Assembly: GCF_902713615.1 (NCBI RefSeq)
Contig: NC_052157.1
Location: 58,354,325 to 58,418,324 of the forward strand
Reading direction: 5' to 3'
DNA from: Scyliorhinus canicula
Lineage: Eukaryota
DNA length: 64,000 bases
The position numbers were made by a program, and so were the translations under genes. Numbering within the stretch: the first letter of the stretch is position 1; the number at the start of each line of letters is the position of its first letter. The notes under the pieces were generated by a model. The model was not told the DNA's origin, searched no databases, and worked only from the letters and a program-made list of their open reading frames with translations. Below are positions 16,296-43,487 of this stretch, one piece after another.

Positions 16296-16435
16296 TTAAA
16301 CAGACTGAGGACTTCCTTGAACTGTTCGTCTCTCCCAGACACAAATCCCAGCGACAGTGATAACGACAACCACAATGAATATCACAGCTCGTATTCCCAG
16401 GATCAGGATCACGTCCAGATTCTCTCCTCCACTGT
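16296..16435 (-). CDS. Terminal transmembrane exon with intramembrane Arg and short tail (activating-receptor type); candidate last exon of Siglec-like gene B
   Basis: Acceptor TGTGTTTTTCAG, phase 1; encodes (Y)SGGENLDVILILGIRAVIFIVVVVITVAGICVWERRTVQGSPQSV*. Not in the ORF track because it lacks an ATG. Confidence 0.75.
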
Positions 16436-16635
16436 CTGAAAAACACACAGAAAGAAATCATCATTTACTCTCTGCTTTCAATCTCTCACTCTGGCTGAAC
16501 AATCCAACTGAATATCACTGCGACATTTGCTGTAATATTGATCCATCCACTGGGATTAAATGGATCCTGAGTGGATAATCTGAAATCTCTCCTTAGCGTG
16601 GAACATTGGTGAGAATTGATCATTGTCCTGTTTGA

Positions 16636-17142
16636 CTCCCTGGCGTTGAGCCGCCCGGAAGGTGCGGAATCCTCCACACCTTCTGGGGCTAGGCCGGTGC
16701 CAGAGGGTTTGGTGCCACGCCAGCCGATATCAAAGGGCTTGGCGCCACGTCAACCGGCGCCGAAAGGCCTCCGCCGGCTGGCGCGAGTTGGCGCATGCGC
16801 GGGAATGGCAGCGTATGCTGGCGTCATCCCAGTGCATACGCAAGGGGGTTCGTCTCCGCACTGGCCATGGCGGAGGTCCACAGCAGCTGGTGCGGAGTGA
16901 GAGTGCCTCCACGGTACCCCCCGGGGCCAGATTCCCCCCGCCGGATGGACCGGCCTAAAACGGGCAGCCGCTCAGCCCATCGTGGGCCGGAGAATTGCCA
17001 GGGTGGGCCGCTGCCAGCGGCCGCCCATTCCTACCCCCGCCAAAACCCCGGCACCGGATAATTCGTCAGCCGGCGAGGGCAGGACTCACGCCACCCCCCC
17101 GGTAATTCTCCGGCCCGGCGGGGGGGTCGGAGAATTCCGCCC
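16636..17142. mobile_element. Non-autonomous Harbinger (MITE-like), left end unclear
   Basis: GC-rich; terminus GGAGAATTCCGCCC then CTG. Confidence 0.7.
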
Positions 17143-17341
17143 CTGGTTCATGATGCAGAGCGAGGCCAGCAGCGTGGGTTTATTTCCCATACTGGCTGAG
17201 GTTATTCACAAAATAATGTCACTGAACAGCTTCAGGGCATTCTGGAGAGGGAGGGAGATAAAACAGAGGTCATGGTACATGTTGGTACCAATGACATCGG
17301 AAGAAAGAGGGCTGAGGGGTTACATCAAGAATTCAGGGAAT

Positions 17342-17753
17342 TTTCATGATATGCAGGCACACACACACACATAATGATATACAGACAAGCAGCTAATGGA
17401 CACAGTAAACAGGACATGACCAATAAACAGGCAGGACACTCAGGGGTGGGATCTGACCATAAAAGACACGAGGCACTCACACTCCGCCTCTTTCCACTGA
17501 TGAACATCTAGAGAGTCAGTCAAGAATGTTGTTACAATCTCACACCTCCACCACGTGGCTAAGAGCTAGTCTGGTTCAGTCAGACAGAGTAACCACACTT
17601 AAGTTAACAGAGAGTCGAACTCACAGAGAGCTGTGCTAACTGTGCTATTAGTTCAATAAACCTGATTGAACTAACTTCAAGGTCTGGAGTATCTTTCTGA
17701 TCTAATCTGCATCCAGTTACAGCCAGTGTTAGACCAGTGTACCTAACGCAACA
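17342..17753 (+). mobile_element. Solo LTR in CR1 ORF1
   Basis: T(t)TCATGATAT...CAACA with AATAAA; TSD GGAAT/TGAAT (1 mismatch); layout like the 9178 LTR. Confidence 0.72.
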
Positions 17754-18316
17754 TGAATTAGGCAATAGACCTCTCGGGTTGTAATCTCTTGATTACACCC
17801 AGTCCCACGTTCTAGTGAATACAGAAATAGGAGAATAGCACAGATGAATGCATGGCTTAAGAGTTGGTGCAGGAGGGAAGATTTTAGATTCCTGGATCAT
17901 TGGGACCGTTTTTGGGGAAGATGGGACCTGTACAAGTGGGATGGTCTGCACCTTGTGGCGCTAACAATTGCACACAAAAGACTCGATACGGTACAAGAGA
18001 GGCTTTATTACAGTGAGAAGCTATTCCTTCGGCTGCAGCTGTAGAATGGCTTCTCAGGGAAACTTATGAATATTTATACTGCTCCCTGTGGGCGGAGCTA
18101 GCCGGCAGGGGCTTACCGGAAAACCTGTAATACAGGTACTGTCGTACATCCCCTAATGCAAGCACACACATATATACAGTGGTAGAGATCACCACATTCA
18201 CCCCCTGTAAAAAATGAGTCCGGCGGGGGTGACGTGAAACTATAATACATAAACGTGATCTATTTACAGAGGGGGGGGAAAAAGAACCAAGAGTCCATCG
18301 GGCAACCCAGTGCCCG

Positions 18317-20302
18317 TCACAGGTTGAGTCGGACCGGCGGTCGGACGTTCCGTTGCGAGCGGCGCAGCAGTGGTGGCGACGTCTGCACAGGCGGTGTCGG
18401 CGTCGACGGCGTAGGTGCTGACGGTGTTGGCACTGGCAAATGGCGCGATGACTCCGGGAGCGAGACAAAATCTTCCATGTCCTCTCGTGTGGGCAGGGGA
18501 ACGAGGGATGGACCTGGTGGGGCGGAATTCGGGGGTGCTGGGGAAAAGGAGAGTGGCGCGTGGGTAGGGAGGAGTGTGGGCATGGGGTCGGCACCCGAGG
18601 GAGCCAGGTCCCTGAGCGAGACTGTATCCTGGTGGCCGTCGGGGAACTCCACGTCGGCATACTGGGGGTTCGCGTGGGGCAGGCGTACCTTATCCACCAG
18701 AGGGTCTGTCTTGTGGAGTCTGACATGCCTACGAAGAAGGACTGGCCCTGGAGTAGCGAGCCAAGTCGGGAGCGACAACCCGGATGTAGACTTCCTAGGG
18801 AAGGCAAAAACACATTCATGGGGTGTACTGTTAGTTGCGGTGCACAGTAGCGACCGAATGGAATGGAGCGCGTCAGGGAGGACCTGCTGCCAGCGAGCGG
18901 CTGGGAGGTTCCTGGACCATAGGGCCAGCTGGACGGCCCTCCATAACGTCCCGTTCTCCCTCTCTACCTGCCCCTTTCCCCGGGGGTTGTAGCTGGTCGT
19001 CCTGCTGGAGGCGATATCCCTGCTGAGCAGGAACTGACACAGCTCATCACTCATGAATGAGGATCCCCTGTCACTGTGGATATATTCGGGGAAACCTAAC
19101 AGAGCGAATATGGAATCCAGGGCCTTGATGACGGTGGCAGACGTCATATCCAGGCATGAGATGGCGAAGGGGAACCTAGAGAATTCATCGACCACACTAA
19201 GGATGTACGTGTTGCGGTCGGTGGAGGGGAGGGGCCCTTTGAAATCCACGCTGAAGCGTTCAAAGGGGCGGGACGCTTTCACCAGGCGCGCGCGGTCTGG
19301 CCGGTAGAAGTGCGGCTTGCACTCCGCACAGACCTGGCAGTCTCTGGTGACTGTCCGTACTTCCTCGACAGAGTAGGGCAGATTGCGGGCTTTGACCAGA
19401 TGGTACAACCGAGTGACCCCCGGATGGCAAAGGCTCTCGTGCAAGGCACGTAGCTGATTCACTTGTGCGCTGGCACATGCACCTCGGGAGAGGGCATCTG
19501 GGGGTTCGTTGAGCTTGCCAGGGCAATACAAGATCTCGTAATTATAGGTGGAGAGCTCGATTCTCCACCGCAAGATTTTGTCGTTTTTGATCTTGCCCCG
19601 CTGCGTGTTGTTAAACATGAAGGCTACCGACTGTTGGTCAGTGAGGAGAGTGAATCTCCTGCCGGCCAGGTAATGCCTCCAGTGCCGCACCGCTTCAATG
19701 ATTGCCTGGGCCTCCTTCTCAACAGAGGAGTGTCGGATTTCGGAGGCGTGGAGGGTGCGGGAAAAGAATGCCACGGGTCTGCCTGCCTGGTATAGAGTGG
19801 CGGCAAGGGCGCCATCTGAAGTGTCGCACTCTACTTGGAAGGGCAGTGTCTCGTCTACTGCGTGCATCCCGGCCTTGGTTATGTCTGAGCGAATACGAGC
19901 GAAGGCCTGTTGTGCCTCGGCCGTGAGGGGAAATTGTGTGGACTGGATCAGTGGGCGGGCCTTGTCCGCGTATTGTGGGACCCACTGGGCATAGTAAGAA
20001 AAGAACCCCAGGCAGCGTTTGAGAGCCTTGAGGAAGTGGGGGAGGGGAAGCTCCATGAGGGGGCGCATGCGGTCGGGATCGGGCCCCAGTAGTCCGTTTT
20101 GGACTACGTAGCAGAAGATGGCTAAGCGGTCTGTGCGGAACACGCACTTCTCCTTGTTGTAAGTGAGGTTGAGGAGAGATGCGGTGTGGAGAAATTTAGC
20201 AAGGTTGGCGTCGTGGTCCTGCTGGTCATGGCCGCAGATGGTGACATTGTCTAAGTACGGAAACATGGCCCGCAGTCCGTACCGGTCAACCATTCGGACC
20301 AT
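18317..20302 (-). CDS. Gypsy pol segment: RT C-half, RNase H, integrase
   Basis: 661-aa ORF: FPYLDN, ECDTSD..VAFFSRTL..EKE, HHCC finger, SVDFKGP/HSDRG/ERENG DDE triad; no chromodomain. Confidence 0.9.
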   Translation of the reverse strand: MVRMVDRYGLRAMFPYLDNVTICGHDQQDHDANLAKFLHTASLLNLTYNKEKCVFRTDRLAIFCYVVQNGLLGPDPDRMRPLMELPLPHFLKALKRCLGFFSYYAQWVPQYADKARPLIQSTQFPLTAEAQQAFARIRSDITKAGMHAVDETLPFQVECDTSDGALAATLYQAGRPVAFFSRTLHASEIRHSSVEKEAQAIIEAVRHWRHYLAGRRFTLLTDQQSVAFMFNNTQRGKIKNDKILRWRIELSTYNYEILYCPGKLNEPPDALSRGACASAQVNQLRALHESLCHPGVTRLYHLVKARNLPYSVEEVRTVTRDCQVCAECKPHFYRPDRARLVKASRPFERFSVDFKGPLPSTDRNTYILSVVDEFSRFPFAISCLDMTSATVIKALDSIFALLGFPEYIHSDRGSSFMSDELCQFLLSRDIASSRTTSYNPRGKGQVERENGTLWRAVQLALWSRNLPAARWQQVLPDALHSIRSLLCTATNSTPHECVFAFPRKSTSGLSLPTWLATPGPVLLRRHVRLHKTDPLVDKVRLPHANPQYADVEFPDGHQDTVSLRDLAPSGADPMPTLLPTHAPLSFSPAPPNSAPPGPSLVPLPTREDMEDFVSLPESSRHLPVPTPSAPTPSTPTPPVQTSPPLLRRSQRNVRPPVRLNL

Positions 20303-21697
20303 TTCTCGCTGAAATACCGAGACCCCATTAGTGACGCCGAAGGGAACCCTAAGAAATTGATACAGTCGACCGTCTGCCTCGAAGGCAGTGTAGGGACGGT
20401 CCGATTTACAGATGGGGAGCTGGAGGTAGGCGGATTTCAGATCAATTGTGAAGACCCGGTACTGTGCAATCTGATTGACATATCAGATATGCGAGGGAGT
20501 GGGTATGCGTCGAGCTGCGCGTACTGGTTGATGGTCTGGCTGGAGTCCACGACCATCCTGTGTTTCTCCACCACCACTTGGGCCCTCCAGGGGCTATTGC
20601 TGGCCTCGATAATACCCTCCCGAAGCAGCAGCTGGACCTCGGACCTGATGAAGGACTTGTCCTGGGAGCTGTACCATCTGCTCCTGGTGGCGGCGGGCTT
20701 GCAGTCTGCAGTCAGATTGGCAAAGAGGGAGGGAAGGTCAACCTTGAGGGTCGTGAGGCCGAAAACGGTGATGGGAGGTAGGGGTCTGCCGAATTTGAGG
20801 GTGAGGCTCTGGAGGTTACATTGGAAATCCAGGCCCAGTAAGAGTGGCGCACAGAGGGTGGGGAGAACGTACAGGCGGAAACGGTTGAATTCAACGCCCT
20901 GTACGGTGAGTTTGACCAGACATAAGCCCCGGATCGGGACAGGGTGGGATCCGGAGGCCAGGGAGATCTGCTGGTTGGCAGGATGGACCGCAAGGGAGCA
21001 GCGCCTTACTGTGTCCGGATGGATGAAACTGTCCGTGCTCCCGGAGTCGATGAGACAGGAGGTCGCGTGGCCGTTGATGAGCACCATCGTAGAAACGGTG
21101 GCCAGGTTGCGAGGGCGGGATTGGTCGAGCATCATGGAGGCGAGTAGCGGGCGATTGACCGAAGAGTCCAACGAGTCCGATGAGTCGCGGCTGCGACCCG
21201 GGTCCCGTGGTCCCGTTCCAAGGGGAGGACAAAATGGCGGCGTCTGGAGTACCTGCGGAGAAGAAGATGGCGGCGCCCATGCAGCGCACGTTGCAGGGGC
21301 GGGGCAAGATGGCGGCGACCATGGAACGCACACGGAGTCGGAGGATGAAGCTGGCAGCACCATGGTGCGCACATGGCGGGGGCGGCGAAAGATGATGGCG
21401 CCCACTGATCGCACGTGGCCCCGGGGGCAGCGGACGGCAGGGCCCATTGCACGATCGGCTGCGGCGAGGGGGGGAGTTTGGGCGCGATAGCGGCAACTGC
21501 GCGGGACTAACACACCGCTGCAAAGTGGTCTTTCTTGCCACAGGATTTGCAGGTCGCGGTGCGGGCTGGGCAGCGCTGGCAGGGGAGCTTCTGCTGACCG
21601 CAGAAGTAGCAGCGGGGACCCCCAGGGTGCGTGGTGCGGCGAGCAGCGCAGGTGTAGTGCGCGGGGGAGGCTGCTGGGGGGGGGGCGGTTGCGGGGT

Positions 21698-22267
21698 TCA
21701 CGAGGGGTAGGATGGGTGCGCCGCACGGCTGGCGGGGTAGGATTGCACATTACGGGAAGTGGCCGTCATTGAGAGCGCTAAGGTCTTTGTTGCCACAAGA
21801 TCGAAAGCGGCCCCTTCCAGCAGTCGTTTCCGGATGGGGTCCGATGCAATATCCGTTACAAATACATCCCACATGAGTAGATTCAAATGTTCCATGGCCG
21901 AGACAGCCTGGCAGTCACAGTCCCGTACTAGAGGGATAAGAGCCCGCCAGAAGGCCTCAATCGACTCACCCGGTCGTTGAACGCGAGTGGCAAGTAAATG
22001 TCTCGCAAACAGAGTGTTCGTCGATTGAGCGTAATTCTCTTTGAGCAGTTCCATGGCCCGGGCGTAGGTAGGCGCATCCTGAATCAGCGGGAACACGCTG
22101 GAGCTCAGCCTTGAGTATAGGAGTTGTCCCTTCTGAGCCTCCGATGGTGCAGGGTCCGCTGAGGAGATGTAGGCCTCGAAAACAGCCAGCCAGTGGTTAA
22201 AGTCTTTCCTGGCGTGTGGCGACTGCTGATCCATCTGCAGGCGATCAGGCTTGATTCTGATGTCCAT
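21698..22267 (-). pseudogene. Gypsy gag N-terminal part ending at a premature TGA
   Basis: MDIRIKPDRLQMD...; CCHC knuckles and protease LIDSG follow in other frames. Confidence 0.85.
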
Positions 22268-23441
22268 GATGTTGGAAAATCTCACTGTAATAAATTGAGG
22301 CCCTAACAATTGCACACAAAAGACTCGATACGGTACAAGAGAGGCTTTATTACAGTGAGAAACTATTCCTTCGGCTGCAGCTGTAGAATGGCTTCTTAGG
22401 GAAACTTATGAATATTTATACTGCTCTCTGTGGGCGGAGCTAGCCGGCAGGGGCTTACCGGAAAACCTGTAATACAGGTACTGTCATACATCCCCTAATG
22501 CAAGCACAGATATATACAGTGGTAGAGATCACCACACACCTAAACCAGAGCGGAATCAACGTTATTGCAGGTGGGTTTGCTGGTGCTGTTGGGAAGAGTT
22601 TAAACTAGTTTGGCAGACTGAGAGCAGAATATGGACACAGTGTAACATAGAAAAGCCAACAGGTCATAGGGAATACAGCGGCAGTAAGTTTCAAGAGAGT
22701 ACAACAAGGCTGGAGTATTACAGGTAAAATAGATGAGATAAAGGTGATGATTGACACATATAATAGAGATCACAGAGACATGATTCAGTGAGGAGCAGGA
22801 TTGAATATCCGGGGAAATAGTATCTTCAGGCAAGAGAGAGGAGGGGATAGAAGAGGAGGAGGCTTTGCATTATTAGTCAAGGAGGCAGTTACTGCGGTAA
22901 GGAGGGATGATATCTTGAAGGGGGCATCAAATGAAACTTTGTGGGTAGAGCTAAGGAATAAAAAAGGGACAGCTATGTTGCTCGGCGTTTATTATAGACT
23001 TCCAGATAATCAGCATAAAATTGTGCGCAATTCACAGAGGGTTCTAAAAATAATAAGTGGGTAATTATATTAGGTGATTTCAACTTGCCCAAAATTAATT
23101 GGGATAGCCATCATATTAAGGTCTGAGGTGGAGTAGAGTTCTTAAAATGTATACTGGAGAACTTTTATTTCAATATGTAGAGGATTCAACAAGGGACGGT
23201 GTAGTGTTGGACCTAATTCTGGGGAATGAAGCCAGACAGGTGGTTGATGTGTTGGTGGGGGAGCATTTTAGTGATAGCGACCTTAATATGGTGCAATTTA
23301 AATTTCTTATGGACAAAGAAATGGACAAGTTGCAAAAAAAGGTTTTGGATTGGGGGAGAGCTGATTTTAACAAAGTAAGGCAGGATCTGGCCAAGGTAGA
23401 CTGGAAAGCGGTCCTTTTAGGGAAATCTGCAGATGAGCACT

Positions 23442-23474
<33 letters not shown>

Positions 23475-24578
23475 GATGAAATGGGTAGGGTACAGGCCCA
23501 ATAAGTTCCTTCAAGGGTAATGGGGAGGTGTAACAAGCCCAGGGAACCATGGGTGACCAGAGACATTCAGGATACGATGAGAAGGAAAAGAGAGGCTTTT
23601 AACAAGTACAAGGGAAGCAAATCAGCAGAGGCAATAGTGGAGTATAAAAAGTGCAAGATGGAGCTTAAAAAATCAATTAGGAGAGCAAAGAGGGGATATG
23701 AGAAAGCTCTAGCTGGTAAAAGTAGGACAAATCCCATGATATTCTACAAGTATCTAAATGGGAAGAGGATAACCATGGAAAGAGTGGGGCCCATTAAGGA
23801 TCAAGGGGGAAATCTGTGGGTGGAGCCAGAGGACGTTGGTGGGGTGTTGAACAAATATTTCATATCTGTCTTCATCCAAGAGAATGAGGAGGTAGGAATG
23901 GAACTCGAGGAGAGAGATTATGAGGTTCTTGAGCAAATTGTCAGAGGGAGTGCAAAAGTACTGGAGGTACTGGCGGGCTTAAAAGTGAACAAATATCGAG
24001 GTCCGGATGAATTGTGTCCCAGGCTGCTGTGGGAGGCGAGGGAGGAGATTGCCGGGGCTCTGACCCAGATTTTTAATTGCTCTCTGGCCACGGGGGAGGT
24101 GCCAGAGTACAGAAGAACAGTTAATGTGCTCCCACTATTTAAGAATGGTTGTCGGGACAAGCCAGGGAACATCAGACCAGTGAGTCTCACGTCAGTGGTT
24201 GAGAAACCACTGTAGAAGATTCTGAAGGAGAGGTTCTATCTCTAATTGGAGAGGGAAAGTTTTATCAGGAATATCAGCGTGGGCTTTGTCAGAGGAAGGT
24301 CATGCCTAACAAACTTGGTTGAATTTTTTGAGCATGTAACCAAGTGTGTCGATGAGGGTAGATGTAGTTTATATGGATTTCAGCAAAGCCTTTGACAAGG
24401 TCCCACATAGGAGACTTATTAAGAAGGCAAATGCACATGGGATACAGGATAACTTGATACGGTGGATTCATAATTGGCTTAGTGGTAGGAGATAGAGGAT
24501 GACGATTGATGGCTGCTTTAGTGTCTGGAGTAAGAAGTCTTACAACACCAAGTTAAAGTCCAACAGGTTTGTTTCAAA

Positions 24579-24613
24579 CACGAGCTTTCGGAGCACGGCT
24601 CCTTCTTCAGGTG
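24579..24613 (-). ncRNA. Minimal hammerhead ribozyme motif (mirror copy)
   Basis: Reverse complement of 24685-24719. Confidence 0.7.
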
Positions 24614-24684
24614 AATGGAAAGGCTTGTTCCTTTCAGGTTCCTTCAGGTGAATGGAAAGGCTTGTTGGAACAAGCCTTTCCATT

Positions 24685-24719
24685 CACCTGAAGAAGGAGC
24701 CGTGCTCCGAAAGCTCGTG
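24685..24719 (+). ncRNA. Minimal type I hammerhead ribozyme motif
   Basis: CAC CTGAAGA A GGAGC-CGT-GCTCC GAAA GC TC GTG: core boxes, stem II, palindromic mini stem III. Confidence 0.7.
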
Positions 24720-25512
24720 TTTGAAACAAACCTGTTGGACTTTAACCTGGTGTTGTAAGACTTCTTACTGTGCTCACCCCAGTCCAACGCCGGCATCTCC
24801 ACATCATGATTAGTGTCTGGAAGCCAGTGACCGTGGCGTACCACAGGGATCTGAGCTGGGCCCCCACCTTTGTCATTTATATAAATCAGTGAGAAGTCTT
24901 ACAACACCAGGATAAATTCCAATAGGTTTATTTGGAATCAATAGCTTTCGGAGAGCAGCTCCTCCATCAGGCGAGTTCAATTCACATCATTCGGGACTTG
25001 TGGGAGGAAACCGGAGCACCTGGAGAAAGTCCACACACAGACACAGGAGAACATGCAGACTCCATGCAGACCTTATCAATTGGGGCTTGACTACAAAAGC
25101 AGGGAGGTCATTATGAAGCTGATAGAACTTTGGTGAGGCCACAGCTGGCGTACTTTGTGCAATTCTGGTCACCACATTATAGGAAGGATGTGATTGCACT
25201 TTAAATGGTGCATAGAATATTCACCAGAATGTTGTCTGGATGCAACATTTAAGTTATAATGAGAAGTTGGATAGGAAACGCAGGAACGAACAGCCACGTC
25301 TGCTTGTTGCTTTTGATGGTTGCGCCACGTACATCATGCGCATGCGTGTGGGGAGATGGGGAGAAGCACCATTTTCTCTAGACAGAAAGGGTACACCATG
25401 TTAAAGGAATAAAGGAATAAAGGGATAACAACTGCCTCTGCAGTGCGGTGAGCCTCCAAAAATTGATTTATCACCGCTGAAATTTTAAAATTACTATCTT
25501 ATTTCCTTCTCT

Positions 25513-25720
25513 GGGGCAGCACGGCGGCCTAGTGGTTAGCACAACCGCCTCACGGAACTGAGGTCCCAGGTTCGATCCCGGCTCTGGGTCACTGTCCGTG
25601 TGGAGTTTGCACATTCTCTCCGTGTCTGCGTGGGTTTCGCCCCCACAATCCAAAAAATGTGCAGAGTAGGTGGATTGGCCACGCTATATTGCCCCTTAAT
25701 TGAAAAAAATAATTGGGTAA
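25513..25720 (+). mobile_element. HE1/V-SINE-like SINE
   Basis: GGGCAGCACGG head, A box TGGTTAGCAC, B box GGTTCGATCCC. Confidence 0.8.
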
Positions 25721-26319: not shown

Positions 26320-27406
26320 GGAATTCACTCCCACAAGGAGTGGGGGGAATGTGGAACTCACTCCCACAAGGAGTGGGGGGAATGTGGAACTCACTCCCAC
26401 AAGGAGTGGGGGGAATGTGGAACTCACTCCCACAAAGAGTGAGGGGGAAATTGGAATTCACTCCCACAAAGAGTGGGGTGAAACTGGAATTCACTCCCAC
26501 AGGGGGTGGGGGGTAATGTGGAATTCACTCCCACAAGAAGTGGGGGGAATGTGGAATTCACTCCCACAAGAAGTGGGGGGAATGTGGAATTCACTCCCAC
26601 AAGGAGTGGGGGGAATGTGGAATTCACTCCCACAAGGAGTGAGGGGAAACTGGAATTCTCTCCCACAAAGAGTGGGGGGAATGTGGAATTCACTCCCACA
26701 AGGAGTGGGGGGAATGTGGAATTCACTCCCACAAGGAGTGGGGGGAATGTGGAACTCACTCCCACAAGGAATGGGGGGATGTGGATTTCACTCTCACAAG
26801 GAGTGGGGGGAAACTGGAATTCACTCCCACAAGCAGTGGGGGGAAACGGGAATTCACTCCCACATGGAGTGGGGGGAATGTGGAATTCACTCCCACAAGG
26901 AGTGGGGGGAATGTGGAACTCACTCCCACAAGGAGTGGGGGGAAACTGGAATTCACTCCCACAAAGAGTGAGGGGAAACTGGAATTCACTCCCACAAGGA
27001 GTGGGGGGAAACTGAAATTCACTCTCACAAGGAGTGGAGTGGAATGTGGAATTCACTCGCACAAGGAGTTGGGGGGGGGGGGGGGAATGTGGAATTCACT
27101 CCCACAAGGAGTGGGGGGAATGTGGAACTCACACCCACAAGGAGTGGGTGGAATGTGGAACTCACTCCCACAAGGAGTGGGGGGAATGTGGAACTCACTC
27201 CCACAAGGAGTGGGGGGAATGTGGAACTCACTCCCACAAGGAGTGGGGGGAATGTGGAACTCACTCCCACAAGGAGTGGGGGGAATGTGGAATTCACTCC
27301 CACAAGGAGTGGGGGGGAATGTGGAACTCACTGCCACAAGGAGTGGGGGGAAACTGGAATTCACTCCCACAATGAATGGGGGGAATGTGGAATTCACTCC
27401 CACAAG
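26320..27406. repeat. 33-bp minisatellite (GGAATTCACTCCCACAAGGAGTGGGGGGAATGT), about 33 units
   Basis: Contiguous units with no spacers; internal CACTCC/GGAGTG hairpin. Confidence 0.95.
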
Positions 27407-27440
27407 TGATGGCTCGCTCACCACAACTGAGAAGTGTATT

Positions 27441-28223: not shown

Positions 28224-28493
28224 CTTAAATGTGTCATTTAATCCTATTCTGAAATAATAAGGTCCTGCATCTTTCTGTGTGATATTGGTTATAGTCAGCG
28301 AGCAGTCACCATCTTTCAGGCTTCCAGACAGCCGGGCCCGATGGCGGAAACATGGCACGTCGTGATTGTGATCCTCGGAGTGAAAGGCTGCAGTTGACGT
28401 GTCTCCTTTCTTGTTATTACACCAGACTCCAACTTGAGATTGGTTTCGCGTATTTGATGGACTACTGCAATTACATGGAATCTGTACACACAT
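28224..28493 (-). pseudogene. Truncated V-set exon of a third Siglec-like paralog (C)
   Basis: CVQIPC...FRHRARLSGSLKDGDCSLTITNITQKDAGPYYFRIG; the N-terminus and acceptor are replaced by minisatellite and the final strand is missing. Confidence 0.85.
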
Positions 28494-29745
28494 CTGAGGG
28501 AGTGCTGGACTGTCAGAGTGTCAGTACTGAGGGAGTGCTATACTATCAGACGGTTAGTACTCAGGGTGTGCTGCACTGTCAGAGGGTCAGTACTGAGGGA
28601 GTGCTATACTGTCAGAGGGTTAGTACTCAGGGAGTGCTGCACTGTCAGAGTGTCAATACTGAGGGAGTGCTGCACTATCGGAGGGTCAGTACTGAGGGAG
28701 TGCTGCACTATCGGAGGGTCAGTACGGAGGGAGTGCTGCACTGCTAGCTGGTCAGTACTGAGGGAGTGCTGCACTGTGAGAGGGTCAGTACTGAGGGAGT
28801 GCTGTACTCTCAGAGGGTCAGTACTGAGGGAGTGCTGCACTGTCAGAGAGTCAGTACTGAGGGAGTACTGCACTGTCAGAGGGTCAGTACTGAGGGAGTG
28901 CTGCACTGTCAGAGTGTCAATACTGAGGGAGTGCTGCACTGTCAGAGGGTTAGCATTGAGGGAGTGCTGCACTTTCAGAGGGTCTGCATTGAGGTAGTGC
29001 TGCACTGTCAGAGGGTGAGTACTGAGGGAGTGCTGCACTGTCAGAGGGTCAGTAATGAGGGAGTGCTGCACTGTCAGAGTGTCAATACTGAGGGAGTGCT
29101 GCACTATCAGAGGGTCAGTACTGAGGGAGTGCTGCACTATCAGAGGGTTAGCATTGAGGGAGTGCTGCACTGTCAGAGGGTCAGCATTAAGGTGGTGCTG
29201 CACTGTCAGAGGGTCAGTACTGAGGGAGTGCTGCACTGTTAGCTGGTCAGTACTGTGGGAGTATTGCATTGTTGGAAGGTTAGTATTGAGAGAGTGCTGC
29301 CCAATTGCAGGTTCTGCACAGAGTGAGTGCTGGACTGTCGGAATGTCAAGACTTAATGACTGCTGCATTGTTGAAGTGTCAGTACTGAGGGAGCATTGCA
29401 CTGCCAGAGGGTCAGTATTGAAGGAGTATGTCACTCTCAGAGGGTCAATATTGAGGGAGTGCTGCACTGCCGGTCGGTCAGAACTAAGGGATTTCTACGC
29501 TCTGGATGGGTGAGTACTGAGGTAGTGCTGCACTGTCGGAGGGCAAGTACTGAGGGAGCACTGCACTCTCAGATGATCAGTGCTGCGAGGGTACTGCACT
29601 GTTGGTGAGTCAGTGCTGTGGGAGTGCTGCACTGTCGGAGGGCAAGTATTGAGGGAGCGCTGCACTGTCAGATGATCAGTGCTGCGAGAGTACTGCACTG
29701 TTGGTGAGTCAGTGCTGTGGGAGTGTTGAACTGTTGGAGGGTCCT
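28494..29745. repeat. 33-bp minisatellite (CAGTACTGAGGGAGTGCTGCACTGTCAGAGGGT), copy 1
   Basis: Same unit as 58540-61270, in the intron after the first C2 exon; degenerates to the right. Confidence 0.92.
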
Positions 29746-30241
29746 ATTGAGTCATAGACTCATGTGTCATCTTTGTTACAAGGGACTTTCAGATATTTCC
29801 ACTACCAAGTCTGTTAATAAACTCTACTCACTATTGTACCTTATATTAACCAGTACAATACAGTAAGAGGCTCTCCATAGAATTATCTATCTTCATTCTT
29901 TGTTGTCACGTGATCTTATTTAATTTCTGATGTATACCATTTATTTATATATTTACTCTTCGCACTTTATGTTATATTTCCCCCGAAGTCTCTGACACCT
30001 TAAGATATATGTACATTATTTACCTTATCCTCTTTCATAGTGGATGTTAAATCTGGGTCCCTTCCGCTCCCTCAGAAGGAGATAAATATTCCCAAGGCAC
30101 TTTGCAAGGAGAATTCACACTGGAAATATTTCTCACTGAGAAGGACAATTTTTGTCTTCAGCACATTGCTGTTTGAGGGTTCATGCTCTGCCCTCTCTAA
30201 ATTAATACAGCTCATATAGAATTCATTTTGTCCCTACTTAC

Positions 30242-30535
30242 ATTGCACAGTGAGTATGAGGGTCCGCTCCGATGAAACAGATGGATATCTCAGTCTACAG
30301 GTGAGAGTTTGTCCGTGGTGTCTGAGTGATGGGATCAGGGTCAGAACAGAAGTATAGGTCAGAGTGACGCCATGCTGAGTTACTGTATTTGAGACTGATC
30401 CAGGTACGTCAGTGGGAGTGTCCCAGGTTAAGGCAGGTGCTGTTCCGTTGCATGTTGTGTTGAAGGTGCAGCTTATGTCCACACGCTTTCCTGCAATAAT
30501 TTCAGCCAGGAATATCCTGGGTTTATCTGTGAAAT
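30242..30535 (-). CDS. Siglec-like gene B, C2-set Ig exon
   Basis: 294 bp, AG/GT, phase 1-1; DFTDKPRI...ISCTFNTTCNGTAPALTW...GQTLTCRL...LTVQ; extra Cys for the interdomain bond. Confidence 0.9.
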
Positions 30536-31280: not shown

Positions 31281-31649
31281 CAGAAACATGAAGCCGTGTT
31301 GCAGGATAATAGCTATAGCCGAGACCGCTGTCAAATTCTATCCTGAAAAAATAAGGTCCCGTATCTTCCCGCCTGATGTTGTTTATTATCAGGGAACAGT
31401 CTCCGTCTTTCAGGTCTCCAGACAGCCGGGTCCGATGACGGAATTTTGGTGACTCATGATTGTGATCCTTGGAGTGGAAGGCTAGGGGAGCCCAGGGAAT
31501 CTCTTCCTCAGTATTAAACCAGAGTGCACCTCGCGGTTGAGTTGCTAAATGTGACGGATAGCTGTAATGACATGGAATCTTCACACATGAACCTTCCTGC
31601 GCTGTCACCTCTCGTGGAGTGTCACCTTTCCACTCTTGTGACAGTCCAA
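31281..31649 (-). CDS. Siglec-like gene B, sialic-acid-binding V-set exon
   Basis: 369 bp, AG/GT, phase 1-1; GSCVKIPC, GDCSL, YFFRIE (essential Arg, no F-strand Cys), the Siglec V-set signature. Confidence 0.92.
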
Positions 31650-31709
31650 CTGGGGAGAGAAATATCAATATTTAACACTGGATGGTTTGTAGATCCACTA
31701 GACTCGATA

Positions 31710-34700: not shown

Positions 34701-36397
34701 TGATGAGTATCTGATGGCCATACACCATCTGCATGTTCATCGAGTGGAACCCCTTTCGGTTTGTGAAGACTGGCCTGTCATCTGCAGGTGCTCGCAGGGG
34801 AACATGCATCCCGTCGATCACCCCCTGGACTCAGGGCATCTCGGCAACAGCGGCGAATCCTGTTGCCAGGGCATCCTGGTGGATTCGGTCCATATGGAAA
34901 TGCATGTATCGTGCCAACTGGGCATAATAGGGCCTCCATGACGGCACAGATGCAGCTGTGCACCGAGCTCGGAGAGGTCCCCACTCGTCGCCTGAAAGGA
35001 GCCGTGGTGTATACATTCAGGCCGACTGTCACCTTGACGGCCACCGGGAGTGGGTGTCCTCCCCCATTCCCCCACGGTGCCAGGTGCACCATGATCTGGC
35101 AGAAATGTCGCACTGTGTCCCTGCTCAGCCAGAGTCTTCGACGCCATGCCCGGTCCGGCAGGTCCTCGAATGACAGGCGCCGCCGGTAGACGCGAGGCCT
35201 CCTGCAGCATCTCCTTTGCAGCTCCTCCTCCTCGGCCTGTTGAGCAGCTGGTTCTCCATCCTCAGTGGTTGTCTCCTGTTCCACTGGGACAGGCTCCGCT
35301 GCTGCAGCTTCCCCCTCCTCGGCAGCTCCAGCTCGTAAAGCCTCTGTGAATCCCCCAGAGTTGCAATGACTAGGAGGAAGGCCATCATTGCTGGTTTTAT
35401 TCGAAAAACCATTGTCTGCAGGGGTGAAAGGCTGACATGTTGGCATGGTCATACTCCCATGCCCATCCAGGTCCACCAGGCTTCACAATGGCCCTGGTTG
35501 GCACCGCGAATCCTGCTCCGCACTCCTCGTCCTGTCCGTGCCCGGCACCGTTGGGACCCCTGGCCGTGGCGCCCAACCATACTGCCAGGGTACCATTGGA
35601 TGGTGCGCCCCATGCTAGCAGTATGCTCAATGCCCCTGTCCGGCACCCCCTGTAGGGGCTGATGTGGGCGTTGCCCTTTGGCCTCGGCAGCGGGTGGCGA
35701 CCGGTCGGGGGGTGGCATGGTGGAGGGTGGGGTGGGGGCTGGGGTGCAGGAGTGGTGGGGTGGGGGCTGGGGTGCAGGAGTGGTGGGATGGAGGGTGGGG
35801 GCTGGGGTGAAGGGATGGTGGGATGGGAACTCCCATATGGTTGGTGACACTCTGCAGAACCAGGGGCTGAAGTGTGTGGTCAGAGGGGTTTGCAGCAAGG
35901 TGGCTGCCTTTGCAGGCTGCGGCTATGGCGGTTCATGCCTGGACACTCCAATCCCCTGGGGGGCCAACCCAGCCCCATGGCCCAGTCTGCTGTCACCCAC
36001 CCTGAGGCACTGGCAAGCCCCCCTCCCAGCACAGCCAGCCTGGCCAGCGTCAGGGCTTGCAGCCCACAGGCGTGCATCACCGTGTCCTACCTCCTCTCTC
36101 TCACCGTGATCAGCCACAGCGCCTGTTTCCTGATTTTTATAAGCAGAAGTGAACCTTGCCACCAGGAATTCTCCCAAGTGGAGGAGGAGAATCGCGGAGG
36201 CCCCGGAGAATGCTGGATCAGACCCGCTAATGATATGAAAATGCCGTCTACCGTAGGAACGCATTGATGCTGCTGTCGAGGGACCAAGAATTGCAATTTG
36301 CCAAGAATTCGCCGTCCGCCACGATATTGCCGTCAAAGCCGATTCTCTGGCCAATCGCGTTTCCCGATTCCGGCATGGCCAACGGAGAATCCCGCCA
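31710..36397. mobile_element. PIF/Harbinger transposon copy 2 (degenerate), in gene B intron
   Basis: Accessory gene remnants (+) about 31930-33545, transposase (-), terminus GGAGAATCCCGCC at 36384-36396; left boundary approximate. Confidence 0.78.
34160..35412 (-). pseudogene. Harbinger transposase copy 2, multiply frameshifted
   Basis: RRRLWLSRDTVRHFC, PLPVAVKVTV, IRNMIEQCFSLQKLQFGCLD, RDALIAFRF. Confidence 0.85.
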
Positions 36398-37112
36398 ACA
36401 ATCTTTTGAGCTGGGGTTCCATTCTGGAATCTTCCCGTTCACCAATAGGGATCGTCACACCCTCAAGAGGAAACATTCTCTCTGTGCCCACTCGATCAAA
36501 ACCTTTGAGAATTTTGAAGGCCTCTGATAGATCACGTACCCCTCAGCCTTCTTTTCACAAGAACAAAGACCCAGCCGGCCAATCCTTTCCTGATAAAGGA
36601 CACACAGGACAGAGAAAAACAGCAACAGTCGGATTCTTTCCATCCCCTCCCCCCCTGCTCCGCCCGTCAATTCAATCCTGCTGATATTGACAGTGCCGAT
36701 GTGGAGAGGGTGTTTCCTCTTGTGGGAGAATCTGGAACTGGGGGTGGGGAGGGGGTCACTGTTTAATCACAAAGTGGTCGCTCATTTAAAACGGAGATGA
36801 GGAGAAATAGTTTCTCCCAGGGGGTCGTGAAGAAAAGGTGGTGGAAACGGAGGCCAAGTTTTCTGGCCAGCTTGCTGGGATGATCTGGTTCTGTTGACGG
36901 TGTACATGGAATGGGAATCCTCATTGTGGCTCCCACCACCATCCAATGGTGGGCTGCCTCCACTGGCAGTGAACATCCGGTGAATGGCACGGAAAATTCC
37001 GTCCATAGTCTGTGAACATTTTTAAGGCCGAAGTGGAGAGGATCTTGGGAAGCAGGAGTAGGCGATTGGTTATCGAGGGGTGGTGGGCAGGATGCAGATT
37101 TTCCACCAGGGA

Positions 37113-37460
37113 GGTGGAGGCATAGTGGTATTGTCATTGCACTAGTAATCCAGACACCCAGATTACTGCTCTGGGATCCCAGGTTCAAATCTCACCACTG
37201 CAGATGATGAAATTTGAATTCAATAAAAATCTGGTATTAAAAATCCAGTGATAACCATGAAACCATTGTTGATTGGTGTAAAAAGACATCTGGTTCACTA
37301 ATGTCCTTTAGGGAAGGAAATCTGCCAATCTTACAGGGTCTGGCCTCTGTGTGACTCCAGGCCTGCAGCAACGTGGTTGACTCGTAACTGCCCCTCAAGG
37401 GCAATTAGGGTTGGGCAATAAATGCTGGCAAAGCCCACGACGCCACGTTCCATGAATGAA
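37113..37460 (+). mobile_element. tRNA-derived SINE of a second family
   Basis: A-box-like GGCATAGTGG and B box GGTTCAAATCT; family not named with certainty. Confidence 0.55.
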
Positions 37461-38559
37461 TGAAAAAAAAAGTACCTTCAGATCAGTCATAATGGCCCTG
37501 TGTTTACATTTTCGTATGATCTACATCTAAACTCCATCTACCCGTCTTGGTTCCATAATCGTTAATCAGCGCAACCAATTCCAAGCAAATGAGCATTGGT
37601 TAGCACTGTTGCTTCACAAGGTCTCGCGTCGTTTCCCGGCTTGGGTTACTGTCTTTGCTCCGGTTTCCTCCCACAGGTCCCGAAAGACGTGCTTGTTAGT
37701 TGAATTGGACATGCTGAATTTTCCTTCAGTGTACCCAAACAGGCGCTGGAATGTGGCAACTAGAGGATTTTCACTGTAACTTAATTGCAGTGTTAATGTC
37801 AGCCTACTTGTGACACTAATACAGATTATTGTATTATTGGTATTATTATACAGCCTCCTGAAGTGCAGTGGCCAGAACCTGAATGGGTGGCCTTGTCGGG
37901 TGCTCTTTCAGAGGGTCGGTGCAGACACGATGGGCCGAATGGTCTCACTCTGTACTGTAGGGATTCTATGATTCTAGTTGCTTCAGATGCGATCCAACCA
38001 GAACTTTGTATAACCTCAGCACAACTTCCTCCCGTATTGATTCACTATTTCCTTGCCTGTCTTTTTGAAGAGTCATGTACAAGAGTGTCACCTCTGATAA
38101 AGAGTCCATTCCCACTCCTACTGATTCATATAGGAGGGGGGGGGGGGTATAGTGGTTAGCACTACTGCCTCACAGCACCTGAGCCGTGGGAAACGTGGGT
38201 TTCCTCCAATTGCTCTACGTTCTTCCCACAATCCAAAATGTTTGCAGGTTAGGTGGATGGGCCAATCTAAATTTGCCCCTTAGTGTCCAAAAGATGTGGA
38301 GCTTAAGTGGGGTTTCAGGGATAGGGTAGGGTAGTCGGCATAGATAGGGTGACTTTTTGAAGGGTCCGTGTCGACTCAATGGGATAAATGGCCTCCTTCT
38401 GCTCTGTAGGAATTCTATGGTAAATCTATTGTAATGTTTACCTCCACATTTCTGGGATCATCCTTGTAAATCTTCTCTGCACCATTTCCAAAGTCTCTAT
38501 GACCTTTTTATAGTTTGGTCTAAAGAAGGTTTGATACAGGTTTCTAATAATAATAATGT

Positions 38560-38820
38560 TTATTAGTGTCACAAGTAGGCTTACATTAACACTGCAATGA
38601 AGTGGCTGTGAAAACCCCCTCCACTGCGGCGCCTGTTCGGGTACACTGAAGGGGAATTCAGATTGTCCAAATTACCTAACAAGAACGTCTGTCAGGACTT
38701 GTGGGAGGAAACCGGAGCACCCGGAGGAAACCCAGGCAGACACGGGGAGAAAGCCAGGAAATCGAACCCGGGTTCCTGGCACTGTGAAGCAACAGTGCTA
38801 ACCACTATTATGCCGCCCAC
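38560..38820 (-). mobile_element. HE1/V-SINE-like SINE
   Basis: Reverse complement of the SINE core (GTGGGAGGAAACCGGAGCACCCGGAGGAAACCC). Confidence 0.75.
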
Positions 38821-39325
38821 AACTTCGCTCCTTTTCAATACTATCCCTCCAGAAATAAAGTCTAGTGTTTGGTTTGTTTGTTTACAGCTTTGCTAAACTG
38901 TGATGTTCATTTTAACAATGATGTGACTGTATCCAAATATCCTGATTCTTCCACCCAACCTTATTCTGAAACCCTGGTTAACCTGGACATGGTGATGTCT
39001 GAAAAGAGGAGACCCAGACAGGAGACAAGGTGAGGCAATAGCAAAAGGACCCAAAAGATGAGTCTCAGACAGGGGACAGGAAGAGGGGACAGGATACAAT
39101 CCCAAGAGAGGATCCCCAAACAGGGGACCGAGGCAGGGTACAGGTGGGGTGCTAGTCAAGTAGAAAGACGAGAAGACGAGCAGAGAAAAGAGCTCTAAGA
39201 AAAGCCCGAAGATTGAAGAAGGCAGCAGAATAGTGTTAATTCCGTGCTGTGGGCTGTTGAGACTCGATGGGACAAATGGCCTCCTTCTGCTCTGTAGGAA
39301 TTCTATGGTAAATCGCCTTTGGACA

Positions 39326-39672
39326 TAGACATAGACATAGAATTTACAGTGCAGAAGGAGGCCATTCAGCCCATTGAGTCTGCACCGGCTCTTGGAACGA
39401 GCACCCTATCAAAGCCCATACCTCCACCCTATCCCCATAACCCAGTCACCCCACCTAACACTAAGGGCAATTTGGACACTAAGGGCAATTTATCATGGCC
39501 AATCCACCTAACCTGCACATCTTTGGACTGTGGGAGGAAACCGGAGCACCCGGAGGAAACCCACGCACACACGGGGAGAACGTGCAGATTCCACACAGAC
39601 AGTGACCCAAGCCGGGAATCGAACCTGGGACCCTGGAGCTGTGAAGCATTTGTGCTAACCATTATGCTACCG
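39326..39672 (-). mobile_element. HE1/V-SINE-like SINE
   Basis: Near-complete reverse copy of 27441-27795. Confidence 0.85.
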
Positions 39673-39954
39673 TTCTGCCCTTTAAAACAACAGGTAATTC
39701 GTGCACGATAAACCCCCAATCTTAATAACAGCCATGGGAATGGCTGGAGCAGTCATATTGAGCTGAAGTTAGGCTTGTGAGCTGGTGCTTGAGTTCATAT
39801 TGGAATTCAGGAGGCCCGAGTCTTGGTAAATGAAAATGAAACCCTGTGATGCAGGCTTTCATTGAGATTGTCTGAGTGGTAGTGAATTTTAGAGAGAAAT
39901 TCATGGTCAGATCGTCGGAGGTGAAGACTGGAAGCCCTCATGAGTGAGACAGAC

Positions 39955-40283
39955 CTTAGAACATAGAACATAGAGTGCAGAAGGAGGCCATTCAGCCTAT
40001 CGAGTCTGCACCGACCCACTTCAGCCATCACTCCCGTCCTAGCTCCGTAACCCAACAACCCCTACTAACTTTTTGGATACTAAGGGCAATTGAGCATGGC
40101 CAATCCACCTAACCTGCACAGTTCTTTGGACTGTGGTAGGAAACCGGAGTACCCGGAGGAAACCCACGCAGACACGGGGAGAACATGCAGACTCCGCACA
40201 GACAATGACCCAGCGGGGAATCAAACCTGGGACCCTGGCGCTGTGAAGCCACAGTGCTGGTCACTTGTGCTACCGTGCTGCCA
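39955..40283 (-). mobile_element. HE1/V-SINE-like SINE
   Basis: Near-complete reverse copy with (ACATAGA) tail. Confidence 0.85.
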
Positions 40284-40863
40284 TTGATAAATACCTTCAA
40301 TGAGATAGGTTTACTGAAGATATTTATTAATGCCTGGGTGGATTGCCATGAGGTCCATGAGATCTGCCTTGGTCCCATTTACTGTATAATTTGAACTGTG
40401 GGTACGAGACTACAATTTGCCAATTAATTCACATGGACTTATATGTTAGAGTATAAGGTAGGTATTGTAAATTGTTTTATCCTTCTGACCCTGAATAGTA
40501 ACGTTTATTTTTGTTTGTTCAATCCCCGTGGAAATTTGGGGCTTTATTCTCTTAGCAATTGTTGTGAATCTGAAACTTGGTCAACTTTAAACAAAACTGA
40601 ACTAACTGAAACTTGCCAAACCTTTGGGGATCTGGTCGAGGATCGTGACAATCTAGACTTGAACCTTCCAAGTAATACGTTTTTAAAAAATATATCCTCT
40701 AAGGAGAGCTGGATGTATGTTTGAAAGTGATGAATTTAGACGGCTAGAGAGATAGGACTGGGGAATAGGACAAGCTACATAGCTCTTTCAGGAGATGGTT
40801 CAGCCAAGATGGGCTGACTGGCCTCCTTCTGTGCTTTTAAATTCTATGATTCTATGTGGGCAG

Positions 40864-41140
40864 TGTCTGAGGAATCTCTTTAGATCCTCATTGTCTGAGG
40901 AATCTCTTTGCAGTCTCAATGTTTCAGTCTTCTCTTCGATCCTCATTGTCCAAGGAATCTCACTCGATCCTCATTATCTAAGGAATCTCTTGGACCACCG
41001 TTGCCGAAGGAATCTTTTTGGATCCTCATTGTCCAAGATATCTCTATGGATCCTTATTATCCGATTAACCTTTCTGGATCCTCATTGTCTAACATATTTC
41101 TTTGGATCCTCACGGTCTAAGGAATCTCTTTCTATTTTCA
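40864..41140. repeat. Degenerate ~28-bp minisatellite (GATCCTCATTGTCTAAGGAATCTCTTT)
   Basis: About 10 diverged units. Confidence 0.75.
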
Positions 41141-41406
41141 TTGTCGAAGGGATTATTTCTGATCAAAACCCCACATAGTTGGACTGTTGATTCTGATGCA
41201 GCATTGGAGACTGACATGTCCCCAAACTCAGCACTGACCCCACTCCAGCAGACACTGTGAAACACACAAACAAAGTGCCTCTAGCCTGAGATCTGCGAGT
41301 GTCGGAGGTGTCTGCTTGTTGGATTATTAACCTTCACAGATTGTCTCACTGTGTTTTGTTTAAAACTGAACTGGGCCCCACACAAAATGCTGACACCAGA
41401 AACCTT

Positions 41407-42019
41407 GGCCGGGATTCTCCCCTACCCGGCGGGGCGGGGGGTCCCGGCGGGACGGAGTGGCATGAACCACTCCGGCGTCAGGCCTCCCCAAAGGTGCAGG
41501 AATTCTCCGCACCTTTAGGGGCTAGGCCCGCGCCTGACTGGCTCCCGTTCCGCCGGCCAGTGCGAGCGGCCTTTGGCGCCATGCCAGCCGGGGCCGAAAG
41601 GCTTTCGCCGGCCAGCGGAAGTCCATGCATGCGCCGGTGCGTCAGCGGCTGCTGATGTCATACCGGCACATGCGCAGGGGAGGGGGTCTCTCCCGCCTCT
41701 GCCATGGTGAAGGCCATGGCGGGGCGGAAGAAAAAGAGTGCCCCCACGGCACAGGTGGGCCCCCGATCGCGGGCCAGGCCACCGTGGAGGCACCCCACCA
41801 GCACCAGATGTGCTTCCCGCCGGCGGGAACGGCCTGTCAGCGGCGAGACTTCGGCCCATCGCAGGTCGGAGAATCGCCGCGAGGGGCCTGCCGACCAGCG
41901 CGGCGCGATTCCCGCCCCCGCCGATTCCCGGGTGGCGGAGAAATAGGGCCACGGCAGGGGCGGCATTGATGCCGGCCCCGGGCGATTCCCCGAACCCCGG
42001 GGGTCGGAGAATTCCGCCC
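41407..42019. mobile_element. Harbinger MITE, 613 bp
   Basis: TIRs GGCCGGGATTCTCC / GGAGAATTCCGCCC; 3-bp flanks CTT/CTG. Confidence 0.85.
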
Positions 42020-43006
42020 CTGTATTCTCTGTTCTTCTCAAATATCCATGATTTCAGGAGGAAACCAAAATATTGCTGAGCAAGGAACAGTGATCATCAG
42101 ATTGTAGAATTAACCAGCACACACATAGGCCATTCAGCCCATCTAGCTGTTTGAAAGATCGATCAAATTTGTCCCCACGCTCCCCTTGCTCTTTATCCCC
42201 ATAGTGCTGCTATTTTTATCCTTCAGTTATTGTACCAATTGGCCTTTTAAAAAAAAATTCAAGTACCCAATTCATCTTGTTCCAATTAAGGGGCAATTTA
42301 GCGTGACCAATCCTCCGACCCAGCACATCTTTGGCCCACGCAATCATGGGGAGACATGCGCCGTGCTGCCCTCATCCAATTGGCCTTTTGAAAGTTTCTG
42401 TTGAATCTGCTTCCAGCACCTTTCGGGCAGTGACTCAGTGGTCTCCTTCTGAGCTGCAAAGTTCAGAGATTCTGAGAAATGTAAACTTTGCAGCAGATCA
42501 AAGATAATCATGAGAACTGGAAATATTTCACACCCTTTATACACTGACTGCTCTGCCTTCCTTCTCTTTTTCAGTTATCTTTCACCTTTATTGAAGTTTC
42601 CAGCGTGTTGAGAATGGACAGGAAGTATCCTAGCAGAGTACCAGCATCAGGAGAGACATCACCCTCCAGTTTCTGTGCCAGATTCTCTACTCAAATTATC
42701 AACCCCTGTCAATGACCTACTTACAGCAACAACACAATTTAAAAATTCTCCTCTAGTGCCACAACCCTCCCTATCTCTGTAATCTCCTCCAGTCCCTACA
42801 ACTCTCTGAGATCTCTGTTCTCCTCCAATTCTGCTGTCGGATAGGGAATCAGTGTAAACAAGTGACCAAAGGGGTGATGGGTGAATGGGACTTAGTGTGG
42901 GTTTGTCCACTGGGTCACTGCTGTATTGGTTCCCAATCAGAGCTCAAGAATGATCTTTTACAAAGAATATTAACCATAAATCTGACCAAGCTGATGATGG
43001 TATTAC

Positions 43007-43046
43007 CTTGAAGAAGTGACATGAGGAAGTAAGATTTCCCGATCAT
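43007..43046 (-). CDS. Siglec-like gene B leader (signal peptide) exon
   Basis: ATG at 43046: MIGKSYFLMSLLQ+G|GTAATA, phase 1, joins V exon to give ...LLQVGLSQEWKG; acceptor CTGCAG just upstream. Confidence 0.75.
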
Positions 43047-43487
43047 TGTCCACCTGCAGATATTTCATCAGCTTCTCACTCTCAAGCTCTGGAAGAGAAA
43101 GGAGTTAATGAGACCTCACCTCTTGTCTGACAGCTCTCGAGAGATCAGAGCTGCTTTCCGACAATGTCTTCACAGACTAATTTGATCCTGTGTGGGATGA
43201 TAGGTGCTCAGCCGAGAGTTACAATGCTTTAAGAAAGAAAAACAATGAAGGACCTACATTTCTATAGAGTCTTTCACAGCCTCAGGATGTCTGAAAGCTG
43301 ACTCTGCAAGTCACTAGTCCCTTGAAAAGAAAGAAGTACTGTTTGACAGACCTGAGCCTCACATCTTGTTGAAATAAGTAGAAATCTTTCAAAGGCATCT
43401 TTCATTGGAATCTGTCGTTATAAAGTCGCAACTTCAACAAAGAACAACGCTGTTCGTGGAAGTCAATCCAATCGTTACATTACTTAC

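Follow-up and report, generated by a model that had tools for sequence, protein, structure and literature searches.

A predicted two-domain activating Siglec in the catshark Scyliorhinus canicula and the possible origin of its distant transmembrane exon

Can exons that lie on either side of 13.8 kb of repeat-rich DNA encode one intact activating receptor, and from which gene did the last of these exons come? The question is raised by a stretch of 64,000 nucleotides from the small-spotted catshark, Scyliorhinus canicula (NCBI RefSeq assembly GCF_902713615.1, contig NC_052157.1, positions 58,354,325 to 58,418,324 of the forward strand), which we refer to as the window. It contains a gene of the Siglec (immunoglobulin-like lectin that binds sialic acid) type, here called gene B, with exons for a leader, a V-set and a C2-set immunoglobulin (Ig) domain. 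Far downstream lies an exon for a transmembrane (TM) segment carrying an arginine (Arg-TM exon). A preliminary description of the window had proposed that the four exons form an activating Siglec, and that the TM exon could originally have belonged to a lost paralog, C, which would make gene B a chimera. Our analysis indicates that gene B is quite probably a real gene. Its four exons would be joined across the 13.8-kb intron to encode a type I protein of 280 amino acids (aa), which is predicted to activate through an adaptor and may owe its present structure to a deletion. Exons, splice sites and phases were read directly from the window sequence. All exons of gene B are on the minus strand, and its features are as follows:

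43007..43046, minus strand: leader exon, coding part; ATG at 43046, 13 codons plus 1 nt, donor G/GTAATA, phase 1 out; equals residues 1-13 of the RefSeq protein P0022 described below
31281..31649, minus strand: V-set exon, phase 1-1; acceptor CAG, donor GTAAGT; encodes Cys35, Cys40, Cys98 and R116 in the motif YFFRIE
30242..30535, minus strand: C2-set exon, phase 1-1; canonical splice sites, donor GTAAGT; encodes Cys159, Cys165 and Cys216
16296..16435, minus strand: terminal (TM) exon, phase 1 in; strong acceptor; encodes a short stalk, a TM helix with R250 in the motif ILGIRA and a 12-aa tail without tyrosine; stop codon TAA at 16298-16296
15550..15555, minus strand: poly(A)-like signal ATTAAA found by pattern scan, the first after the stop codon and about 740 nt downstream of it; a candidate 3' end only

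When joined, the four exons form 843 nt that encode 280 aa and a stop codon. The coding span of the gene is 26.8 kb, with 13,806 bp in intron 3 between the C2 and TM exons. The proposed single open frame of leader, V, C2 and TM exons is borne out by this join, including the C-terminus that had been predicted, and direct reading confirmed the canonical splice sites. Each internal boundary has an AG acceptor or a GT donor with a good pyrimidine tract, and phase 1 is kept throughout. The acceptor sequences are ...TCTCTCCCCAG for the V exon, ...TGTGTGTCAG for the C2 exon, and ...TGTGTGTTTTTCAG, with a long pyrimidine tract, for the TM exon. The leader exon was likewise found where it had been placed, except that the coordinate first given for its end, 43053, lies upstream of the ATG by 7 nt. 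Among all open frames in the window, the TM segment encoded by the 16296-16435 exon has the top hydrophobicity score. Exons of the immunoglobulin superfamily are normally of phase 1-1. Frame continuity alone is weak evidence for the join, because any V, C2 and TM exons of a phase 1-1 family join in frame. The strong evidence comes from homology, together with an identical, independent RefSeq model.

The 280-aa product is the same at every residue as RefSeq XP_038669859.1/XP_038669861.1 (P0022), named 'sialic acid-binding Ig-like lectin 14 isoform X1' [Scyliorhinus canicula], and the TM exon matches the C-terminus of P0022 at 45/45 positions. A search with the C2 exon retrieved P0001 ('sialic acid-binding Ig-like lectin 14 isoform X2'), which is 100% identical. 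The 90% cluster of P0001 comprises P0022 and P0001 only, that is, RefSeq entries alone. The model of gene B is already annotated in RefSeq, whose pipeline reached the four-exon structure independently, and the new part of the present work is only the possible origin through deletion and exon capture. The name Siglec-14 is an automatic pipeline label and should not be read as a statement of orthology to primate Siglec-14. RefSeq contains three protein accessions for gene B (X1 twice and X2 once), all of them joined to an Arg-TM exon. The NCBI pipeline requires transcript support for alternative variants, and the three accessions suggest that gene B has such support. The reading of gene B as a two-domain Arg-TM receptor is supported by this identical model, together with V-C2-TM(Arg) proteins annotated in other genes. 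Proteins of this architecture with a homologous TM exon are present in a catshark paralog (P0002), in S. torazame (P0004) and in the white shark (P0007, 'CD33-like').

The ectodomain has the features of a Siglec. Pfam recognized V-set (E=3.4e-14), Ig_CD22 (E=1.6e-9) and C2-set_2 (E=3.7e-7) domains in the gene B protein, and a leader, a V-set domain, a C2-set domain and a single TM segment give it the layout of a type I membrane protein. The best match among solved structures is Siglec-5 (2ZG2, E=3.3e-28, residues 25-233). The top 10 PDB sequences are those of Siglec-5, CD33, MAG, Siglec-10 and Siglec-8, with E values from 3e-28 to 1e-22. At the level of sequence, the two-domain match to Siglec-5 at E=3e-28 settles the fold of V-C2 as Siglec-type. 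As to the subfamily, Siglec-5 and CD33 score best for this two-Ig protein, with MAG close behind (E=1e-23). The cysteines C35, C40 and C98 of the V domain and C159, C165 and C216 of the C2 domain align with those of Siglec-5. In sequence, they follow the Siglec pattern of an intrasheet pair in V and an extra cysteine in each of V and C2 for the interdomain bond. The V-domain arginine of Siglecs is essential for the binding of sialic acid (PMC6288428). In gene B, YFFRIE (R116) aligns on YFFRVE of Siglec-5 2ZG2 in the F strand, which makes gene B a candidate sialic-acid binder.

A separate observation concerns P0004, the 'CD33-like' V-C2-TM(Arg) protein of the cloudy catshark S. torazame. A serine replaces the essential arginine in this protein (YHFSIE versus YFFRIE), which recalls the arginine-mutated Siglecs of primates.

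The predicted activating role of gene B follows solely from R250 in the TM segment and from the tyrosine-free tail. Some 26 residues form the hydrophobic stretch, and R250 comes after about 8 of them. The 12-residue cytoplasmic tail has neither an ITIM (a tyrosine-based inhibitory motif of immunoreceptors) nor the related switch motif (ITSM). Siglecs with a basic TM residue are reported to pair with DAP12, an adaptor with an ITAM (a tyrosine-based activation motif of immunoreceptors), and ITIM-bearing Siglecs recruit SHP-1 (PMC6288428, PMC4042635). The arginine had been described as near the outer end of the TM segment and as typical of FcR-gamma-coupled receptors and of Siglec-14. The basic TM residue is indeed there, roughly one third along the helix. 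Siglec-14 is reported to act with DAP12, not with FcR-gamma (PMC4042635, PMC6288428), so that this description runs two separate cases together. The position of R250 does not discriminate between the adaptors. We propose that R250 would pair with an ITAM adaptor, of the DAP12 or FcR-gamma type, through the aspartate in the adaptor's TM segment. A bound sialylated ligand would in this way lead to activation of the cell and not to inhibition, which is also how mammalian Siglec-14, -15 and -16 work. A literature search on shark Siglecs and on shark DAP12 or FcR-gamma found nothing relevant, and no paper was found that names both S. canicula and Siglec.

Several observations weigh against gene B as a membrane receptor that uses the TM exon at 16435. 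No assembled cDNA-derived fragment across the C2-TM junction was found in the protein collection (query P0022:205-280). In the comparison with the neighbouring gene A, the ratio of nonsynonymous to synonymous substitution (dN/dS) of the C2 exon is about 0.9, a value with only 14 differences behind it, and C2 gives no clear purifying signal. A Gypsy element in intron 3, which is in the sense orientation, and an AATAAA 300 nt past the C2 donor could terminate transcripts early. RefSeq, moreover, annotates two copies of the TM exon, which encode identical residues over 38 codons at the protein level. Junction reads are probably unable to tell which copy was used, because of this identity.

Some of these points would also be expected if gene B were mainly soluble, or if its transcripts were removed by nonsense-mediated decay. 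Read-through or polyadenylation soon after the C2 exon would yield a product ending ...LTVQCK, and the TM join would be an annotation made by homology chaining. The unspliced frame does stop two codons past the C2 donor, and AATAAA and ATTAAA signals follow about 300 nt downstream at 29945/29924 (29924-29950, minus strand). An end of exactly this read-through kind is annotated in a sister catshark model, P0003 (XP_038670008.1), and the sense-oriented long terminal repeat (LTR) element within the 13.8-kb intron and the missing junction fragment fit the same account. However, each of the three RefSeq accessions is joined to an Arg-TM exon. The GTAAGT donor of the C2 exon and the acceptor of the TM exon with its long pyrimidine tract are both strong, and the V-C2-TM(Arg) architecture is kept in other sharks. 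We regard a mainly soluble or decayed product as unlikely.

The choice between the two TM copies arises from isoform X2. P0001 has 273 aa and ends in ...ERRTV, the same end as that of the paralog P0002 (XP_038668956.1, 'Siglec-13'). For P0022, the recorded gene range amounts to 73,235 bp, which, counted from the ATG at 43046, reaches window coordinate -30188. From this coordinate arithmetic, X2 appears to join the C2 exon of gene B to a second, near-identical Arg-TM exon about 46.5 kb further downstream. The splice appears to span an intron of about 60 kb and to cross the neighbouring gene XP_038668956.1 to reach the TM exon of that gene. The range of the P0002 gene is 17,156 bp, and it would lie between the two TM exons if P0002 ends at the distal one, as the identical ...ERRTV end suggests. 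The X2 model may be a product of reads with matches in both of the identical TM exons. That gene B is activating only by way of this distal exon common to XP_038668956.1, with the 16435 exon as a relic of dead paralog C, is very unlikely: the annotated range reaches exactly to the distal exon and the shared end and the 38/38 identical copies are inseparable by evidence, but the polymerase reaches the proximal exon before the distal one, its acceptor is intact and strong, its frame stays open through seven extra codons to the apparently ancestral stop of S. torazame and the white shark, and distal use needs that very long intron across another gene.

We return to gene B as a receptor that uses the proximal exon, and to how this exon came to be its last. 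The introns had been described as filled with transposable elements. This holds for intron 3, which carries satellites, a repeat resembling a short interspersed element (SINE) and a Gypsy element, and which also contains a fragment of a third V exon:

28494..29743, no strand assigned: 33-bp satellite, 37.9 copies (TRF), in intron 3; also present after the C2 exon of gene A at 61268-58539
28236..28493, minus strand: V exon of dead paralog C in truncated form, with about 86 codons left; Pfam V-set E=1.1e-8; BLAST identity of 72-74% to the V exons of genes B and A
26320..27406, no strand assigned: second 33-bp satellite, 32.5 copies, in intron 3; unrelated to the first and less than 1.1 kb away from it
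17953..22516, minus strand: near-complete Gypsy-type LTR retrotransposon, sense to gene B; its 222-nt LTRs are 96% identical

The Gypsy element has open reading frames or domains for a gag-like protein, an aspartyl protease, RT_RNaseH and an integrase (rve). The first satellite, 28494-29743, and its counterpart at 58539-61268 are 78-85% identical by self-BLAST. The V fragment of paralog C lacks the acceptor, the initial third and the 3' end of the exon, and it adjoins the satellite directly, at the junction 28493/28494. Its sister in the tree is the V exon of the activating paralog P0002 (97/95 support), to which it is 71% identical. A tblastn search with catshark C2, Ig3, TM and ITIM-tail sequences matched only genes A and B and gave no remnants between 30242 and 16435.

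We propose that a deletion could have extended from the satellite behind the C2 exon of gene B into the V exon of a P0002-like neighbour, paralog C. It would have taken the 3' exons of gene B together with the 5' end of C, and would have left the Arg-TM exon of C as the next usable acceptor. The junction of satellite and V fragment, the sister position of the V of C to that of P0002, and the TM exon of P0002, which is 38/38 identical to that of gene B, make a chimeric origin plausible. Other findings speak against it. B-type V domains are joined to an Arg-TM already in the white shark, the C2 exons evolve in concert and cluster by species, and more than one event would be needed, because the C2 exon of C is also gone. 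Gene B may have been activating before the deletion. The suggestion that the TM exon came from a lost paralog C therefore remains unproven: the V-fragment junction and kinship favour it, whereas the white shark gene and the concerted evolution of C2 count against it. We consider the chances of a chimeric origin to be about even.

Genes A and B are tandem duplicates. Their homology sets in some 56 nt upstream of V, continues through the V-C2 intron and ends 75 nt past C2, at 85-88% identity. Both genes have the same 33-bp satellite after C2, and beyond it gene A has exons for a third Ig domain, a TM segment and an ITIM tail. The RefSeq model of gene A is P0040 ('Siglec-13', 415 aa), which maps here and uses the C2, Ig3, TM and ITIM-tail exons of gene A in the window. 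The gene A segments concerned are as follows:

62757-63545, minus strand: gene A segment
61495-61787, minus strand: gene A segment (C2)
58123-58407, minus strand: gene A segment
57219-57314, minus strand: gene A segment
53936-54112, minus strand: gene A segment

An insertion of about 430 bp, located after ...EWKA, interrupts the V exon of gene A in the window, and the V domain of P0040 is only 58% identical to this exon. P0040 evidently passes over the split exon and takes instead a V exon beyond the end of the window. Between genes A and B, nucleotide identity is 90.9% in V, 95.2% in C2 and 84.3% in the intron between them. The intact exons of gene B had been taken to suggest selection, a claim that is weakly testable here. 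The dN/dS is 0.37 in V, next to the C2 ratio of about 0.9 given above, and the exons are more alike than the intron. The A/B comparison says little on gene B alone, because the V of gene A is broken by the insertion.

Phylogenetic trees were considered as a test of whether the ectodomain of gene B comes from an 'inhibitory' or an 'activating' lineage, and they proved uninformative. The V of gene B groups with the broken V of gene A (84% aa identity), with that of the ITIM-bearing P0029 (85%) and with S. torazame P0011, in a tree that mixes tail types. P0029 is the nearest ITIM-bearing catshark protein, with 87% identity to gene B over V-C2. The C2 tree clusters by species or genus and not by tail type (Arg-TM, ITIM or third type). 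It points to gene conversion or concerted evolution of C2 exons within each shark lineage.

The tail types were defined in a survey of 98 family proteins from sharks and rays. Three were found: Arg-TM; TM with ITIM/ITSM-like motifs; and a third TM type with a longer tail, which in several members ends in an ITIM-like ...VYGNV motif. A profile made from five TM exons was searched against 1.84 billion representatives and retrieved 9 proteins, all from sharks. The shark proteins that end in this exon, P0099-P0105 among them, include, beyond the CD33-like Siglecs, multi-Ig proteins of Chiloscyllium and Hemiscyllium labelled CD22-like, a single-V protein of the whale shark labelled sialoadhesin-like, and proteins of Mustelus and S. 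torazame labelled 'SLAM family member 9-like'. The motif ILGIRA is invariant in 12/12 shark proteins compared. The TM core is identical at 20-26/26 positions among the Siglec-, CD22- and sialoadhesin-like proteins, and at 14-16/26 in the two SLAM-like proteins. Over its length, the TM exon of gene B is identical to that of P0007 at 32/45 positions. The proximal copy (16296-16435) keeps a long tail, with seven extra codons and a stop placed as in S. torazame and the white shark, unlike P0002, which stops after ...RTV. The long tail is probably the ancestral state, since its stop is shared with these two species. Conservation of the TM helix under different ectodomains fits a role in docking a shared partner, and the Arg-TM exon looks like a shuffled activating cassette.

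The closest relatives of gene B differ from it in detail. P0002 has the same V-C2-TM(Arg) architecture and ILGIRA motif, but its V is only 65% identical to that of gene B and its last exon has the shorter end described above. The white shark gene P0007 is of the same architecture and measures 4.6 kb as a whole gene, compared with the 26.8-kb coding span of gene B.

Human Siglec-14 has three Ig domains, whereas gene B has two. In other respects, gene B resembles Siglec-14 and its partner Siglec-5 (PMC4042635, PMC6288428): its Siglec V domain contains the essential arginine, and its anchor has a basic TM residue but lacks an ITIM. As in the Siglec-14/-5 cluster, an ITIM-bearing neighbour lies in tandem, the first two Ig exons appear to be homogenised between neighbours, and a fusion-type deletion may have occurred. 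In the human SIGLEC14/5 fusion allele, a deletion fuses the front part of one gene with the rear part of the adjoining gene (PMC4042635). The activating receptor is lost in the human fusion, whereas the shark fusion would create or keep one. With the shark and human lineages more than 400 million years apart, the likeness is one of convergence in kind and not of orthology. Siglec-16 and Siglec-11 offer a second comparison, as activating and inhibitory neighbours that are kept similar by repeated gene conversion of their ligand-binding exons (PMC5701461). The catshark C2 exons resemble this pair in clustering by species rather than by tail type. They differ from it in that the nearest ITIM form to gene B is P0029, and the matching V of gene A is the one broken by the insertion.

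The gene model itself adds nothing, as RefSeq already holds the exact protein under an activating-Siglec name. What the locus offers is a detailed case of possible exon exchange or capture between activating and inhibitory Siglecs of a shark tandem array, with a putative deletion scar, dead exons that are skipped and C2 exons that evolve in concert. It adds to the evidence for paired-type Siglec receptors in cartilaginous fish, a subject on which we found no open-access paper. The occurrence of a single Arg-TM exon family in several shark receptor families points to one conserved adaptor interface. We tentatively propose, while holding it to be somewhat less probable than its opposite, that gene B was rebuilt by a deletion in which it borrowed the Arg-TM exon of its neighbour, and that this exon is a portable cassette used by at least four Ig-receptor families (CD33-like, CD22-like, sialoadhesin-like and SLAM-like). 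If this is true, gene B would be a shark counterpart of the human SIGLEC14/5 fusion, and a single conserved docking site for an adaptor would have been spread among shark receptors by repeated exon shuffling.

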